From Podarcis melisellensis (Eukaryota): a stretch of 64,000 nucleotides of DNA. The first letter of the stretch is position 1. Each line of letters opens with the position of its first letter. The notes beneath the pieces were generated by a model. The model was not told where the DNA came from. It made no database searches and worked only from the letters and a program-made list of their open reading frames with translations. Below are positions 3,482-64,000 of the stretch, piece after piece. Both the position numbers and the translations under genes were made by a program. The stretch lies in assembly GCA_964234715.1 (NCBI GenBank), contig OZ174289.1; one strand, 5' to 3'.

Positions 3482-3811
3482 AAAGGTAAATGGACCCCTG
3501 ACCATTAGGTCCAGTTGTGACCGACTCTGGGGTTGTGGAGCTCATCTTGCTTTATTGGCTGCGGAAGCCGGCATATAGCTTCCAGGTCATGTGGCCAGCA
3601 TGACTAAGCCACTTCTGGCGAACCAGAGCAGCGCACAGAAACGCCGTTTACCTTCCCGCTGCACTATCTACTTGCACTTTGACGTGTTTTCGAACTGCTA
3701 GGTTGGCAGGAGCAGGGACCAAGCAACGGGAGCTCATGGGGATTTGAACCGCCAACCTTCTGATCGGCAAGTCCTAGGCTCTGTGGTTTAACCCACAGCA
3801 CCACCTGCGTC
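3482..3811 (-). mobile_element. Sauria SINE
   Basis: Reverse complement of the Sauria SINE body (GACGCAGGTGGTGCTGTGGGTTAAACC... to an ACCTTT tail); degenerate flanking repeat caatttgata/aaatttgtta. Confidence 0.88.
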
Positions 3812-3843
3812 AAATTTGTTATACCTATACTAATTTTTTTAAA

Positions 3844-4203
3844 GGGACGCAGGTGGCACTGTGGTCTAAACCACTGAGCCTAGGGCTTGCCAACTGGCAG
3901 GTTGGCAGTTTGAATCCCCACGACACGGTGAGCTCCCGTTGCTTGGTCCCAGCTCCTGCCAACCTAGCAGTTCGAAAGCACGTCAAAGTTCAAATACATA
4001 AATAGGTACCGCTCCAGCGGGAAGGTAAACAGTGTTTCCGTGCACTGCTTTGGTTTCGCAGAAGCAGCTTAATCATGCTGGCCACATGACCCGGAAAAAC
4101 TATCTGCAGACAAACGTCGGCTCCCTCGGCCAGTAAAGCAAAATGAACACTGCAACCCCAGTCGTTCACAACTGGACTTAACTATCAGGGGTCCCTTACC
4201 TTT
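3844..4203 (+). mobile_element. Sauria SINE, full length
   Basis: GGGACGCAGGTGGCACTGTGG head with box B-like GTTTGAATCCC, tail ending CCTTACCTTT; TSD-like tatactaatttt(ttt)aaa at 3826-3843 and 4204-4218. Confidence 0.9.
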
Positions 4204-31552: not shown

Positions 31553-33012
31553 TATGCCAATAACAAGGTCAGTGGAGGTGATGACATTCCAGCTGAACTA
31601 TTTAGCATTTTAAAAGATGATGGTGTTAAGGTGCTACACTCAATATGCCAGCAAGTTTGGAAAACTTAGCAGTGGCCAGAGGATTGGAGAAGATCAGTGT
31701 ACATCCCAATCCCAAAGAAGGGCAGTGCCAAAGAATGTTCCAACTACCGCACAATCGCACTCATTTCACACGCCAGCAAGGTTATGCTTAAAATTCTACA
31801 AGGCAGGCTTAAGCAGTATATGGACGGAGAACTCCCAGAAGTGCAAGCTGGATTTCAAAGGGGCAGAGGAAACAGAGATGAAATTGCAAACATGCGCTGG
31901 ATTATGGAGAAAGCTAGAGAGTTCCAGAAAAACATCTACTTCTGCTTCATTGACTACGCAAAAGCCTTTGATTGTGTCAACCACAGCAAACTGTGGCAAG
32001 TTCTTAAAGAAATGGGAGTGCCTGATCACCTCATCTGTCTCCTGAGAAATCTCTATGTGGGACAAGAAGCTGCAGTTAGAACTGGATATGGAACAACTGA
32101 TTGGTTCAAAATTGAGAAAGGAGTACAACAAAGCTGTATATTGTCTCCCTGCTTATTTAACTTATACGAAGAATTCATCATGTGAAAGGCTGGACTGGAT
32201 GGATCCCAAGCCGGAATTAAGATCGCCGGAAGAAATATCAACAATCTCAGATATGCAGATGAGGCAGAAAGTGAGGAGGAATTAAAGAACCTTTTAATGA
32301 GGGTGAAAGAGGAGAGCGCAAAATATGGTCTGAAGCTCAACATAAAAAAACAACAACAACTAAGATCATGGCCACTGGTCCCATCACCTCCTGGCAAATA
32401 AAAGGGTAAGAAATGGAGGTAATGAGAGATTTTACTTTCTTGGGCTCCATGATCACTGCAGATGGTGACAGCAGTCACGAAATTAAAAGACGCTTGCTTC
32501 TTGGGAGAAAAGCAATGACAAACCTAGACAGCATCTTAAAAAGCAGAGATATCACCTGGCCAACAAAGGTCCGTATAGTAAAAGCTATGGTTTTCCCAGT
32601 AGTGATGTATGGAAGTGAGAGCTGGACCATCAAGAAGGCTGATCGCCGAAGAATTGATGCTTTTGAGTTATGGTGCTGGAGGAGACTCTTGAGAGTACCA
32701 AGAAGATCAAACCTATCCATTCTTAAGGAAATCAGCTCACTGAGCGCTCACTAGGAGGACAGAACCTGAAGCTGAGGCTCCATTACTTTGGCCACCTCAT
32801 GAGAAGAGAAGACTCTGGAAAAGACCCTGATGTTGGGAAAGATTGAGGGTACAAGGAGAAGGGGACGACAGAGGATGAGAGGGTTGGACACTGTTCTTGA
32901 AGCTACCAACATGAGTTTGACCAAACTGCGGGAGGCAGTGGAAGACAGGAGTGCCTGGCGTGCTCTGGTCCATGGGGTCACGAAGAGTCGGACATGACTA
33001 AACACCAACAAT
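31553..33012 (+). mobile_element. BovB (RTE clade) LINE, 5'-truncated, disrupted RT
   Basis: YIPIPKKGSAKECSNYRTIALISHASKVMLKILQ, FIDYAKAFDCV, LRYAD(E), VVMYGSESWTIKKA; 3' end CATGGGGTCACGAAGAGTCGGACATGACT plus CAA tail. Confidence 0.95.
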
Positions 33013-33909: not shown

Positions 33910-34059
33910 NNNNNNNNNNNNNNNNNNNNNNNNNNNNNNNNNNNNNNNNNNNNNNNNNNNNNNNNNNNNNNNNNNNNNNNNNNNNNNNNNNNNNNNNNNN
34001 NNNNNNNNNNNNNNNNNNNNNNNNNNNNNNNNNNNNNNNNNNNNNNNNNNNNNNNNNNN
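33910..34059. other. Assembly gap (150 N)
   Basis: Run of n characters. Confidence 0.99.
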
Positions 34060-43482: not shown

Positions 43483-43503
43483 CGGAACTTTATTTCCGAT
43501 AAT
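43483..43503 (-). CDS. DIAPH2: DIAPH2 21-nt alternative microexon: IIGNKVP
   Basis: tgcatgcag|ATT ATC GGA AAT AAA GTT CCG|gtgagt; phase 0-0 between ...SATAKS and GGLKNS...; resembles the IVGSKV(T/L) insert I recall from mammalian DIAPH2 isoforms; upstream pyrimidine tract and TACTAAT branch-like site. Confidence 0.85.
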
Positions 43504-45420: not shown

Positions 45421-47366
45421 TACTGAATTGGCACATAACAGAGATAGGTAAGGGAGATAACAGATTAATCAGCATACTTTTTAAAATAAAATCATGCAAA
45501 CTGTCAAAGTCAGATAAGTGTTATCAGTAAGAGAAGAATGACAACATGCTTCATATAAGGCTGGCTCCAAGTTTAAGGGTCACAGTTAACAGTAATCTGT
45601 GCTAGACAGCTGGGGTACCCAACTGGGATTGTAGAGGTTGATGGGCAGTGGGATGACAGGTCTTTGAGAGTGGGCTATATATCTCTTGCACCTTCCCCTC
45701 ATGTTTTGAGATGTTTTGTTTCAACTCTGCATATATGTCATTTGGGTGCAATGCAAGGCTAAGTTCTGGTGAGACCCCTGGCTAGCCACATTTGTTTCCC
45801 AAAGGCATATAAATTAGTATATGCAAATTGCACTTCCACCCCAAGTTTTTTAAGTATGTAGCAACACGGGGTGGGGTGGGGGTGGCTATTTTAATTTCCA
45901 CATCACCAAGTATGTAAACATAAATGTAAATAATTAAAATGGTGAGTGGTTCACAGATCCAATCATCCAGCATGGATAGAGAGGGGGCAAGTGTAAGAAA
46001 TGGGGTGTCAACAGCTGCCCAAGGACCCCTGGTACCAACACCTGTCCTGGCTATCAAAGAAATGTTTTTAAATTCCTTAAGATCAAGGTCACAGTAGAAA
46101 ATAATGGCAAGTTACTGCACCTCACTGACACGTATTCATTTGTTTTTCAAACAGTACTCTGCTCAGTAAGATGCAGTTTGTGGACAACTTTACAGCTGAG
46201 ATTTTGCTATAAACATTGCCCCCTCTAGCTACACTTTTCTTGGCCTAGAGTTGGCTGGCAGAGTTTGGTTTAGCACCAAGTTCTGAAAAATGTGTTTGGT
46301 ATACTAACTATTCTTGTGTACTACTAAAAAATGGTGTGTGCTTTCTCCCTTCTAAAGCAAAGTTGGCATTAAAGTTATTGTACAAAGCACCACACTTGAA
46401 GAAACAGTTGTAGTTATTCATCCTCTGCCCACTCCCCTTCCCACCCCCCAGTCAGATAATGTACAGATTTCTTCCAGCTTTCTTTTCTCTCATCTGAAGA
46501 GCTGCTGCATATCAGAATGTTACTTATTAGACTTACATTTCAACCACGTGAAGCATATGCTAAGTTTGGACATAACTGGCAGGACATTAAAAATAAATAA
46601 ATCTTAAAGCTGGCACACCAAGCTGCTTTACTAATACAAGACAAAAAGCCATGCTACAACCTCTGGAAAAAGTATACCTTTATTATTCAGTGTTCAACTT
46701 AACTTTACGATCCTGAGATACATAACCATGCATAACTACCACATGTTTGTCCTAATCTGGCCTTTGACATGCAAGATGTATATTTTTAGGACCCACTCTA
46801 TTCTTGTAATTTGTTTTAGAATGTTTTAATGTTGTATCTTAAATTGTTGTGACCTACTCAGAGCCTAGGGCTTGCTGAACAGATGGTTGTCTCATGCTAT
46901 GAGCAGTTTCCAGTTACGAATGGCCCTCCAGAACAGATTAAGTACGTAACACGAGGTACCACTGTATTGTCAGTGCAATAGTATCCATTTGTAGTAAGGT
47001 TACTGGTTACTCAGTAACTAAATTACACTCAAACATAGAGCACAGGTACCCACTAAATTTGCAGTTGAACGGGCGAAATAAACTGTAGCATGGAAGACAG
47101 TAGCAGTAGATGATCAATTATTCACAGTGGAGCAGGTAAGGGGTCCTTACCCCAGCCCAGCCCACCACCGCCACCAATTCCTCCTACAATCCTTAGTAAT
47201 AATGGCTGCTTTGGATCTTTTCTTCGCTCCCAAGGAGATGAAGAGATCACAGAATTTGGACTCTATGACTGAGCTGCCATCCACCCCAAACTGACTATTG
47301 TAAGAGAAGCTTTGGAGCATATGGGGGTGGGGACAAAAGCAGTGATTTGCAGGTGGCTACCAATAA

Positions 47367-47664
47367 GGGATGCGGGTGGCGCTGTGGGTTAAACCACAGA
47401 GCCTAGGGCTTGCCGATCAGAAGGTCAGAGGTTCGAATCCCCGTGACAGGGTGAACTCCCATTGCTTGGTCCCTGCTCCTGCCCACCTAGCAGTTTGAAA
47501 GCACATCAAAGTGCAAGTAGATAAATAGGTACCGCTCCGGCGGGAAGGTAAACAGCGTTTCCATGCGCTGCTCTGGTTCACCAGAAGCGGCTTAGTCATT
47601 CTGGCCACATGACCCAGAAGCTGTACGCCGGCTCCTAATGGTCAGGGGTCCCTTTACCTTTACC
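47367..47664 (+). mobile_element. Sauria SINE with internal deletion near the 3' end
   Basis: GGGATGCGGGTGGCGCTGTGG head, GGTTCGAATCCC box B, (ACCTTT) tail. Confidence 0.9.
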
Positions 47665-54281: not shown

Positions 54282-54314
54282 CATATCATCTGCCAAAGTT
54301 TTTATCTGAAGATT
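54282..54314 (-). CDS. DIAPH2: DIAPH2 33-nt microexon (equivalent to human exon 2): NLQIKTLADDM
   Basis: aactag|AAT CTT CAG ATA AAA ACT TTG GCA GAT GAT ATG|gtaaga with an upstream T-rich tract; matches recalled human NIQIKTLADDV. Confidence 0.92.
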
Positions 54315-55225
54315 CTAGTTAAGTTTTTAAAAAAAGAAGAAAAAAACAGTATATTACCCAACATACCTTTTGAAATTAACATGAAGTTCCCAAAGCTTAT
54401 TTTTTACTTGTTTCTAAAGCTTTTTTTCATTATTTTCTCACAAAATGCTTCCATACCAGGTATAACACATTTAAAGCCAGCACTACCAAATTTTATTTTG
54501 ACTGTATGTTACTAGTATACCATACCATATCACTTCAACCTCATTTTGACATTACTGTATCATTGTCAAAAAAAAGAGAAATTGGGTGTTGGGTGTTAAC
54601 AGAGAAAAATAAATAGCATCTAATATAACATTACATTGGACTGAACACACAGCAAAATATTTATACACAATACAGGACAGTCTTTGACTAAATAAATAAA
54701 CTGCTTAGGCAGCACTGTGGTTCACACCTTTTTGTCACCAAACAAAGCTTGGTTCAAAAAGTTTGAAGAAAACCTCTGAACTATATGATACTCTAAATAT
54801 ATTACAAGTGACAAAGACAAGGACAATTTTCTAGCCAGTCCTTGTTATAGCTTTGTCTAAGGAGCTTTCTGGCTGGGTTGGTTGACAGTGAGAAAGAAGA
54901 TGATATTAAGAGCTGTGTGAAGCTTTTCCTATCCTCATCAGAAGTCTTTCATTTCCTGGTAAAACCTTATTTTATTGTTTGAAGAATGGCCCAGAGATTT
55001 GCCTTAAGAGAAAATCAGCTTGTGAGGCATGAACAGCATCTTACACACTTTACTTAGTACAGGACATACCAAATGTACAGTCCCTCAAAATATGATGTAG
55101 CACTCTTTATACTTATACTTCCAATGATTTATCACAGAAATAAAATGGCTCAAGGCAACTGTGGATCAAGTTATTGTCCCCTTATAGTGCTAATAGAAAC
55201 ACGTACATTATCTTAATACAGCGGC

Positions 55226-55592
55226 AAAGGTAAAGGGACCCCTGACCATTAGGTCCAGTCATGGCCGACTCTGGGGTTGCGGTGCACATCTCGCTTTATT
55301 GGCTGAGGGAGCCGGCGTACAGCTTCCGGGTCATGTGGCCAGCATGACTAAGCCGCTTCTGGTGAACCAGAGTACTTAATTCGTTCCGGAGGTCCGTTCT
55401 TAAGCTGATACTGTTCTTAACCTGAAACACGACTTTAGCTAATGCAGGCTCCCACTGCTGCCGCGCCACCAGAGCACGATTTCTGTTCTCATCCTGAAGC
55501 AAAGTTCTTAACCCGAGGTACTATTTCTGGGTTAGCGGAGTCTGTAATCTGAAGCGTATGTAACCTGAAGTGTATGTAACCCAAGGTACCAC
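55226..55592. mobile_element. 3' half of a minus-strand Sauria SINE fused to a Tigger-like MITE lacking its left TIR
   Basis: AAAGGTAAAGGGACCCC...GGTGAACCAGAG runs directly into TACTTAATTCGTTCCGG...AAGGTACCACT. Confidence 0.8.
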
Positions 55593-55596
55593 TACA

Positions 55597-56475: not shown

Positions 56476-56840
56476 AAGGTAAAGGTAAAGGTACCCCTGC
56501 CCGTACGGGCCAGTCTTGCCAGACTCTGGGGTTGTGCGCCCATCTCACTCAAGAGGCCAGGGGCCAGCGCTGTCCGAAGACACTTCCGGGTCACGTGGCC
56601 AGCGTGACAAAGCTGCATCTGGCGAGCCAGAGCCGCACACGGAAACGCCGCTTACCTTCCCGCTGGTAAGCGGTCCCTATTTATCTACTTGCACCCGGGG
56701 GTGCTTTCGAACTGCTAGGTTGGCAGGCGCTGGGACCGAGCAACAGGAGCGCACCCCGCCGCGGGGATTCGAACCGCCAACCTTTCGATCGGCAAGCCCT
56801 AGGCGCTGAGGCTTTTACCCACAGCGCCACCCGCGTCCCT
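56476..56840 (-). mobile_element. Young full-length Sauria SINE
   Basis: CpGs intact; (ACCTTT)3 tail; perfect 15-bp TSD ACATCAAGTGTAATA at 56461-56475 and 56843-56857. Confidence 0.93.
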
Positions 56841-61005: not shown

Positions 61006-61929
61006 CCAAATCAAAACGTTGTTATACCAATCACTCAATATTCTCAGTGGAGAGGATACATTAAGTAATATGTTTGAATGTTGAATATGCAAGTGTATTT
61101 GTAGAGACAATGGGTAGAACAAACACTATTAGAAACACTGCTAGATAAGTGTTTAATGGTCATTGTATGTGTATTTGTTTAAAAACCAATTATTATTTTT
61201 TTAAGGCAAACTCTATGTTAAGCAAAGTTGGCAACCCTTAAAGGCTGTCCCTTTACCTGCAAGGTATGATTTCAAACCATGTGATCAAAAATGGACAGCC
61301 TGACATTACTGTGACATGAGGTGCCAGACAGGTAGCTGGCACTGCCCATTTGTCAAACCAAGCCCTTGGGAGTAAGGGAAAATAAAGATTTGGCTGGCAA
61401 GCCTAATCCAGTCCTGCCTTGTTTAAAAGGCATTCCTTCACTCATCCTGTAATTTTGAGGTTCATTTTCATGGCATGAAACGAACTCCTGATCACTTTCA
61501 TGCTCATTGATATGGTTCCAAACTAAAGAAAAACCCTATTTCATGAATACTAAAATATAATAGACTGCAGCCCCAAGATTCTTTGCTGTTTCCATTTATG
61601 ACTCTTACATGATCGTTTAAGACTATAATCCTACACTTACCTTGAAGTCTCACTGAATTCAATAATACATACTTCTGAATGTGCATGCATATGAGTGTAC
61701 TATATAGAAAGTCTGGGCCCTGACATGCTCTGAAAGTATTTGCTGCCTATGTTTCTTTGTAAAGTTGGTAAACTTGGTGTGGTTTGTGGAGCCATTTGGG
61801 TGGGGAGGCACCAAATCCACACAAAGAGCCTCTTGACATAAATTACTATCCATACTGAAAAATCTGCAATTTCCCGTGTTTCAGTCTCTGCAATTCTCAA
61901 AATGACTCAGATTAAGTAACCTTCTACAA

Positions 61930-62489
61930 CAGTGTTTCCCAAACTTTTTTGGGCAACGGCACACCTGTTTACTGAAAAAAAATCTCACGGCACACCACCA
62001 TTAAAGCCCCGCCCCGTGACGTCAGCGCGCAGCGTCACGCCGGGAGGGACGCACGAAAGTGAAAGTTTTTTCCCTCCCCCTTGCCGGGGAACCTCCAAGC
62101 TTTGGGGGTGGGAGGAGGCAGCAGAGCGAGGGACTGAGGGACGGCGGCAACTGAGGCGGCGGCGGCTGTTGTGGTGGTGGCGGCGATAGCGGGCGGAGGA
62201 GGGGGCGGCGGCGGGGCTTGAGGAGCCGTCGCCGGGAGTTGCTGCTGCTGTTGTTGCTGCTGCTGCCCGGACATGCCGGCCTCCTCCTCCTCCGCTGTCT
62301 CGCGCTCCTCCCTTTTGCACGCGCTGCCCCGCCGCTCGGCACCACCACCGCGGAGCCGCCCCCGGCTCGACGCGGATCCTCGCCGCCGCCGCCTCTCACC
62401 GCCCGACTCGCCCGCCTCCCTCCCACGGCACACCAGCCAATGTCTGACGGCACAGTAGTGTGCCGCGGAACACCGGTTGGGAAACACTG
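61930..62489. mobile_element. Young non-autonomous hAT element (560 bp) carrying CpG-island-like cargo
   Basis: 13-bp perfect TIR CAGTGTTTCCCAA; perfect 8-bp TSD TTCTACAA at 61922-61929 and 62490-62497; repeated subterminal CGGCACAC motifs at both ends. Confidence 0.92.
62006..62066. promoter_or_regulatory. GC box + CRE + IRF/ISRE-type motif cluster inside the hAT element
   Basis: GCCCCGCCCC 62006-62015, TGACGTCA 62017-62024, half site GCGTCA 62032-62037, GAAAGTGAAAGT 62055-62066. Motif matches only; activity untested. Confidence 0.5.
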
Positions 62490-64000
62490 TTCTACAATAT
62501 AGACACATGTTGGTTTGTGTTCAAAAATGTTACAGGCAAATATTTTTTATATGCTTTGATGGAATCTACACACACATAAAAACATTCTGAAAATGCTTTT
62601 ATTAAACTGAAAAACAGCCATAGTAAGCATTCATTCCAATGGATACTTAAACTTATTTATATTCTGAAATGTTTGTTGTGGTTGTTCCAATATGCTGTCT
62701 AGCTAATGCCAGCTACAGCAAACAGAACCAACAATATATGGAAGAATTTGGTCATAATTTGTGCCAACATGGAAGCCAACTCTCATGAATTCATTACTGA
62801 CAGCATAGTATCAACATATATTTATACTTTGCTCATGTAGTCTGCATAAAACTCACTATTTTCCTATGCTACATCTGTACTTAAATTATTGTTCATTGGT
62901 TTAATTTCCCACCAGTTAGAGAAGTAACATGGATCCAAAGCTGGTGGAGTTCTGCAAACTGTTCTGAACGACTATCTCTTACTCTGTTTATAGAGATTTC
63001 TGCCTTCAGTTGAGTACAATAAGCCAATTGTTGCGTACTTTAGTTTTTTCTGATATGTGCACCATCCATAGTTCCAGAAGCTTACTGGAATATTTTGTTA
63101 AGGGGGAATTATTGGGTTGTTTTTGTTATGTATTTTCTGTTTTTTATATTGTGATTTTATGTTGTGAATTACCCTGAGATTTATGGGTATAGGGTTGTAT
63201 ATAAATTTTATAAATAATAATACAGAAACATGTCATTCAAATGACATTCATATGTGCATCAAGACATTCAGTAACTTTTAAGCAATTCCAACAGAAACTA
63301 ATGGGCTAAATACAGCCCATTCTTACACATGCTTACCCACGAAGCCGAAATACTATCACCAAACTGTTTAAAATGTAAAATGAAGTTCAATATAAATGTA
63401 AACTAATGCACATTAGGGAAATATATATATAATTTCACATATACACTGACAGGGTCAGAACAGACGGTAGCTAACCAGGAAAAGAATCTTAAGGTCTGAC
63501 CATATCCATCAAAGCTGAATGATGGAAGATTCAGGCTAGAGAAAAGGAAGTAATTCACTACCATCATTAATTATTATTCTTCATTAACATTTGCAATGCA
63601 GGAAGGGTTCGCACATTAGACTTCTACCATTTACATCCACATGTGTTTCCCAAAGTGAGCGATACTGCCCCCTGGGGGGTGCTGGAATGATCCAGGGAGT
63701 GGTAGTAGCCTCAGGTGTAACTGGGGGAGGGGTGCTGAAAAGGGGCAGTGGAAGCATAAGAAAATTTTGAAAAACCATTTGTACAGTACATGCTTCATCT
63801 GTTGTGAAATGATGCTTACTGCCAGATCTCTCCTGGATCCAGTGGTCATGCTGGATGAAAGGGGTAAACCTGGGCTTCAGTATACCCTTTTCAGCTTCAC
63901 CCAGGCCCAGGAAGTGGCTCACAGCTTACCTGCCTGTTGGGCCAATGACAGACGGCAGTGGCACAAGCCCTGACACTGGGCAGATCGACTGAGCCAGCAG

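Follow-up and report, generated by a model that had tools for sequence, protein, structure and literature searches.

The 560-bp transposon at positions 61930–62489 of the window, the whole 64-kb stretch of lizard DNA that was analysed, is probably a multicopy Pack-TIR. We consider it likely that it represents one recent insertion of a multicopy, non-autonomous hAT element of the Buster type that carries a piece of host DNA.

Results

Structure and insertion site of the element

The element is bounded by terminal inverted repeats (TIRs) that are perfect over 13 bp and match at 14/15 positions overall, starting at 61930 and 62489. The left TIR (61930–61942, plus strand) is the 3' end of the element when oriented by its transposase-bearing relatives, most of which place the element on the minus strand, and the right TIR (62477–62489, minus strand) lies inside the right conserved terminal region. 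An unstranded 8-bp target site duplication (TSD), TTCTACAA, occupies 61922–61929 and is perfectly repeated at 62490–62497, so the perfect TIR and TSD reported in a preliminary description of this DNA were found as described. The TSD fits the consensus of Buster elements, nnnTAnnn (PMC3517528), and the TIR length is inside the 5–27 bp range used as a criterion for Buster-family hATs. Within the 64-kb window the element is the sole pair of perfect TIRs (≥8 bp) with an 8-bp TSD, and a TIR and TSD pair at 11 bp was seen in none of 30 dinucleotide shuffles. All four CGGCACAC motifs of the window fall in the ends of the element, against 0.26 expected. The GC- and CpG-rich character previously ascribed to the interior (62000–62420) is evident from its GC content of 0.72 and CpG observed/expected ratio of 0.95, compared with 0.39 and 0.23 for the whole window. 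No second copy of the element was present in the 64-kb window, and an Rfam search of the window gave no match.

Exons of the host gene were located on the minus strand at 54311, 52389 and 18732, the last of which weakly matched diaphanous formins in the PDB (E 0.008). The host gene encodes a formin of the diaphanous type and runs along the minus strand. The earlier placement of the element in a DIAPH2 intron stood as regards the gene orientation, the formin match and the distance to the next exon (54311, 7.6 kb away); the formin is presumably DIAPH2, whose exon 1 lies outside the window. The element, as oriented by most relatives, its 79-codon open reading frame (ORF) and the host gene all share the minus-strand orientation. 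In the same gene, a 21-nt in-frame segment bounded by AG and GT (43483–43503, minus strand, IIGNKVP) may be a microexon.

Several other features of the window were recorded. A degenerate second hAT-like terminus (11/13 TIR matches), with GC-rich sequence behind it, runs from 63641 onward near the window end, and short stretches in both flanks of the insertion (61641–61681 and 62543–62624) are multicopy in the DNA runs and represent small degenerate repeats. One interspersed, moderately CpG-rich repeat family, with members 68–97% alike (3482–4203, 47365–47664, 55223–55593, 56478–56840 and related pieces), makes up the other CpG-rich patches of the window and is probably a squamate SINE. Broken reverse-transcriptase ORFs at 31617–32754 belong to a LINE that is presumably RTE/BovB-like, and a gap of Ns spans 33910–34059.

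Relatives of the element

The left conserved terminal region (61930–61997, minus strand) carries two CGGCACAC subterminal motifs and shares 78% identity with the 3' terminus of a full-length ZBED5/Buster-type element (L007, L008) across 68 nt. The right one (62423–62489, minus strand), with CGGCAC motifs and the TIR, shares 82–92% identity with termini of MITEs and Buster-type elements from metagenome contigs and corresponds to the 5' end of the element in most relatives. A pattern search with the right end matched four metagenome contigs. Two of them contain complete AT-rich MITEs of 299 and 267 bp (L001:809–1107 and L004:1128–1394) with nnnTAnnn TSDs and the same end design as the lizard element; in the other two, the ends adjoin fragments of hAT transposases. 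Both ends of the lizard element are matched by the two ends of L007, a 2320-bp ZBED5/FAM200-type element (L007:105–2424), and the ends of L002, L003, L007 and L008 are 78–87% identical to it, their products having FAM200/ZBED5 and Dimer_Tnp_hAT domains. The contigs that contain L007 and the two MITEs are themselves AT-rich. The CCGG-type end follows the transposase on its 3' side in L003, an arrangement not shared by L002, L006, L007 and L010. The GC content of these relatives is low (0.29 for L007, about 0.40 for the MITEs).

A tblastn search with the fetched transposases found no transposase in the element or anywhere in the 64-kb window, and no lizard transposase could be recognised among the results of a word search that used a Buster fragment. 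The interior matched none of the 11 fetched loci or their Buster transposases. The left-end pattern was absent from the metagenomes searched, as was the right-end pattern from the viral contigs searched. By every feature examined, the element is a non-autonomous hAT of the Buster family.

Mobility and copy number

The empty site that the preliminary description proposed to look for in related species was found in sequencing run X3 (organism B), where a contig of 1523 nt, covered as deeply as the flanks, spans the site but lacks 568 nt, the length of the element together with a single TSD. At the joint, 8 letters fit both sides and represent the single TSD. The element was recently inserted, by cut-and-paste, into an nnnTAnnn target. 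Despite the empty site, 0.88 of the sampled 31-mers of the element were present in X3, indicating that near-identical cargo-bearing copies exist elsewhere. Between 0.80 and 0.95 of the sampled 31-mers were present in 14 DNA-type runs covering five organism labels and seven studies. In addition, the flanking consensus was mixed at both termini (agreement 0.44–0.58, with a TAGA-type target), pointing to many insertion sites. These observations, in which multicopy status is read from 31-mers, contig depth and pooled flank consensus, bear out the earlier claim of multiple copies, and near-identical whole copies are present elsewhere and in related organisms.

Summed contig depth was 230 to 36,000 times the flank depth, but we rejected this sum as a copy number and kept it as a rough bound. 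With a rough correction for overlap (depth/31), the ends would be present in at least hundreds of copies and the least-covered core in about 8–50 or more.

Two further observations were made in run X23. Sixteen RNA reads, all in one direction, crossed from 62490 to 61923, passing from the right TIR through one 8-nt target into the left TIR; this reflects either a head-to-tail dimer of the family within a transcript from elsewhere or an excision circle. At a loose end at 61923, the consensus before the left target resembles another hAT terminus (agreement 0.54), so that in some copies a second hAT end may adjoin the element over a single target site, as composite elements do.

Mosaic organization of the interior

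The interior between the conserved ends is composed of two arms and a core. The GC-rich inner left arm (61998–62147, no strand assigned) has a GC box at 62009 and a CRE-like TGACGTCA at 62017, and its last part, 62133–62147, looks like a later local duplication. The GC box and the adjoining perfect CRE-like motif (62004–62025) are among the most deeply covered parts of the element; they may be a promoter-like module of the family's own or an older capture. The GC/CpG-rich inner right arm (62336–62422, minus strand) opens with a CGGCAC motif at 62337 and has a donor-like GTGAG at 62399. The loose ends of read contigs marked the points at which sibling copies leave the element: 62050, 62079 and 62085 in the left arm, 62377 and 62389 in the right arm, and also 62335. 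Since siblings diverge inside the arms, the family has these GC-rich arms in common, and siblings with different cargo, whose existence had been proposed as a check, were therefore found.

The core (62148–62335, minus strand) has other continuations at both edges. On the right, the junction at 62335 is reciprocal: the arm 62335–62423 follows another interior in X15, and the core with the ATG runs beyond 62335 in both X5 and X15, into other sequence, which on the minus strand reads as a CCAAT box and GC boxes upstream of the untranslated region (UTR). On the left, siblings in X3 join 62132 directly to a CAGCTGA motif whose equivalent position is about 62148, and in four contigs of X5 the sequence goes on from 62151 (edge 62148–62151) in a manner that keeps the reading frame (…AAAS-AGPMPAG). 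Each alternative context was represented by 4–5 contigs, a number compatible with a single-copy gene as well as with a longer subfamily of siblings, and the second contexts may be the donor gene or such a subfamily. The core is the least deeply covered part of the element in an alignment at 85% likeness, which also attracted unrelated GGC-rich contigs and, for reads, skipped 62234–62270 as a repeat.

From these data we infer that the captured block is about 62148–62335, or ~188 bp, and consists of ~61 nt of purine-rich 5' UTR, the ATG at 62274 and 42 codons rich in Gln, Pro, Thr and Ala. The preliminary description had taken some 420 bp as one captured 5' end. The single block did not hold, as the interior is a mosaic; what remains is a ~188-bp core that resembles a gene 5' end and has a second sequence context, and that is probably the captured 5' end of a host gene.

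The 79-codon ORF and the donor gene

On the minus strand, the ATG at 62274 opens a frame of 79 codons with a TGA ending at 62035, as previously claimed. We rejected its length as evidence for a gene, since an ATG ORF as long as this occurred in 41% of shuffled interiors. Codons 1–42 are cargo and the remaining 37 (codons 43–79) are supplied by the inner left arm. Because the GC-rich arm is common to siblings with other interiors, the ORF is a chimera, most likely non-functional and probably not a gene. Searches of Pfam and the PDB, a word search, an exact look-up and a search of the ESM Atlas found no relative of the ORF, and phmmer against 1.84 billion representatives returned seven matches, all to unrelated repeat proteins and three of them RCC1-like; a 42-residue, low-complexity piece from a long protein is a poor query for such searches, and two of them exclude full-length proteins by length.

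The claim that the ORF has no in-frame splice donor was confirmed. Its donor-like GT(A/G) sites, at 62054 (phase 1) and 62038 (phase 2), do not fit the next host exon, whose acceptor is phase 0. Donor-like GTGAG sites occur outside the ORF at 62399 and 61988. A folding z-score of −4.7 was rejected as a sign of structured RNA, as pairing of the TIRs and GGC/GCC runs on opposite strands likely explain it.

As for the donor, the ORF opens with MSGQQQ, the mammalian RANBP9 protein starts with MSGQ followed by Pro/Gln runs, and the cargo may be RANBP9-like. If capture took place, RANBP9 is a putative, somewhat favoured candidate. The N-terminal Pro/Gln stretch of mammalian RANBP9 is documented (PMC5424273); its N-terminal letters were not printed in the literature found. 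Protein searches with the ORF matched neither RANBP9 nor another relative, a result of little weight for a 42-residue low-complexity piece. Among the retrieved sequences and read contigs, no transposon-free, TIR-less parent locus was seen.

Transcription

Raw RNA reads of X23 were aligned to the element and its near flanks; the next host exon lies beyond this stretch, 7.6 kb off. Depth was zero over the unique flanks, and over the element there was no position at which many RNA molecules start. In the UTR/ATG part (62256–62378) the two directions were about equal (20/25, 33/36 and 37/40), whereas in 62133–62255 one direction was in excess, a region to which GGC-rich reads from other sources also match. 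Contigs of X15, a probable RNA run, match the core exactly, which indicates that the sequence is present in RNA from some locus. The simplest reading is that this copy is most likely a silent, neutral passenger of the intron.

Discussion

Pack-TIRs are defined by the ends of a TIR element around an interior that is not transposon-derived, with a unique parent of ≥90% identity that has no transposon in its flanks (Tan et al. 2021, PMC8277862). Here, TIR-element ends are present on both sides of the internal sequence. With respect to the origin of the interior, it matched none of the 11 fetched loci, among which the lizard autonomous element is not included, and junctions are found at both cargo edges. 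It is consistent with this reading that multicopy Pack-TIRs tend to capture GC-rich DNA (PMC8277862).

It is rather unlikely, in our view, that the element is an ordinary high-copy MITE whose interior is the family's own GC-rich sequence, for example the promoter and UTRs of a lizard autonomous Buster together with trinucleotide runs, with the ATG frame arising by chance. The length of the ORF is what chance would give, the ORF is without a protein relative, the arms occur in very many copies, and in most relatives the right end corresponds to the 5' end of the transposase, where an element's own promoter would lie. However, junctions delimit the core at either side, and elsewhere it runs into promoter-like and into frame-keeping sequence, the fetched relatives are AT-rich inside and at the 5' end and do not match the interior, and the depth of the core is the lowest in the element, as expected of a subfamily-specific insert. 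A one-off capture at this site, in which a resident MITE was gap-filled from a host template to give a single-copy Pack-TIR, would follow the commonest route in animals (PMC8277862), but it is already contradicted and hardly credible: the orthologous site in X3 is wholly empty, X3 nevertheless contains most of the element's words, and the core is multicopy.

The element could also act as a portable promoter, an unmethylated copy starting transcripts in the host direction that are spliced (e.g., from 62399 or 61988) to the next formin exon and thereby create an alternative 5' end. This role would suit an element that lies in the host gene's orientation, has kept its CpG density and contains GC boxes, a CRE-like motif and two GTGAG donor-like sites, and chimeric transcripts of Pack-TIRs are known (PMC8277862). 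We nevertheless think it very unlikely, given the lack of an RNA start peak, the zero depth in the flanks and the balanced RNA directions over the UTR/ATG part, which are as expected for read-through of scattered copies. Moreover, the CCAAT/GC sequence upstream of the cargo is absent from this copy, no in-frame donor is available, and high CpG content is expected of any young copy. A bolder picture, in which Buster hATs of wall lizards capture CpG-island gene starts again and again and multiply them into tens or hundreds of copies, many more than in the animal Pack-TIRs described so far, and in which some copies, this one included, stay unmethylated and serve as polymorphic alternative promoters of their host genes, is speculative and we hold it to be improbable.

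Under the preferred reading, a multicopy Pack-TIR, an ancestral MITE of the family would have acquired at least ~190 bp from the CpG-island start of a host gene. The capture route proposed for Pack-TIRs, a template switch in the course of repair or replication (PMC8277862), could have operated here. An autonomous Buster transposase that binds the CGGCAC motifs would then have multiplied the new unit in trans, and later deletions and exchanges among siblings would have produced the mosaic interior. It counts against this reading that the GC-rich arms may derive from the lizard's own autonomous partner.

If this is correct, a lizard hAT family carries a gene start at many sites, and its insertions differ between related genomes, providing empty and filled alleles that would allow tests of the capture mechanism and of whether a CpG island stays active after it has been moved. 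It is the pattern across the family, and not this single copy, that is of value.

Similar designs are known in other systems. Buster-family hATs, such as the MITE Mar of Drosophila willistoni (PMC3517528), the MITEs L001 and L004 and the ZBED5/FAM200-like elements L002 and L007, likewise have an 8-bp nnnTAnnn TSD, a short TIR starting with CAG, CGGCAC subterminal repeats and two ends built with the same asymmetry. Inside, they are AT-rich or are deletion derivatives of the transposase gene, whereas the interior of the lizard element is CpG-island-like and unrelated. With respect to the cargo, the multicopy Pack-TIRs of animals are closer. Pack-hAT-N8_XT of Xenopus tropicalis, a frog hAT that captured the 291-bp 5' UTR of CAPSL, likewise places non-autonomous hAT ends around a short GC-rich 5' fragment of a gene, and such elements likewise spread by repeated transposition into distinct target sites (PMC8277862). 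They have about 3–5 copies and a known parent, whereas the lizard family seemingly has tens of copies or more, is common to related lizards and has mosaic arms. In a survey of 100 genomes, 208 hAT Pack-TIRs were found, and only four Pack-TIRs overall among the reference-genome cases were multicopy, with few copies each (PMC8277862). The Pack-MULEs of rice are likewise non-autonomous TIR elements with GC-rich gene fragments and are often multicopy (PMC8277862). They belong to another superfamily (Mutator) and another kingdom, and their effects on host 5' ends have been demonstrated in rice. Mutator elements have long TIRs and a 9-bp TSD, and Pack-MULEs that are mosaics from multiple sources are known. 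The kind of element described here is thus already known; what appears unusual is its copy number, which is apparently rare in vertebrates.
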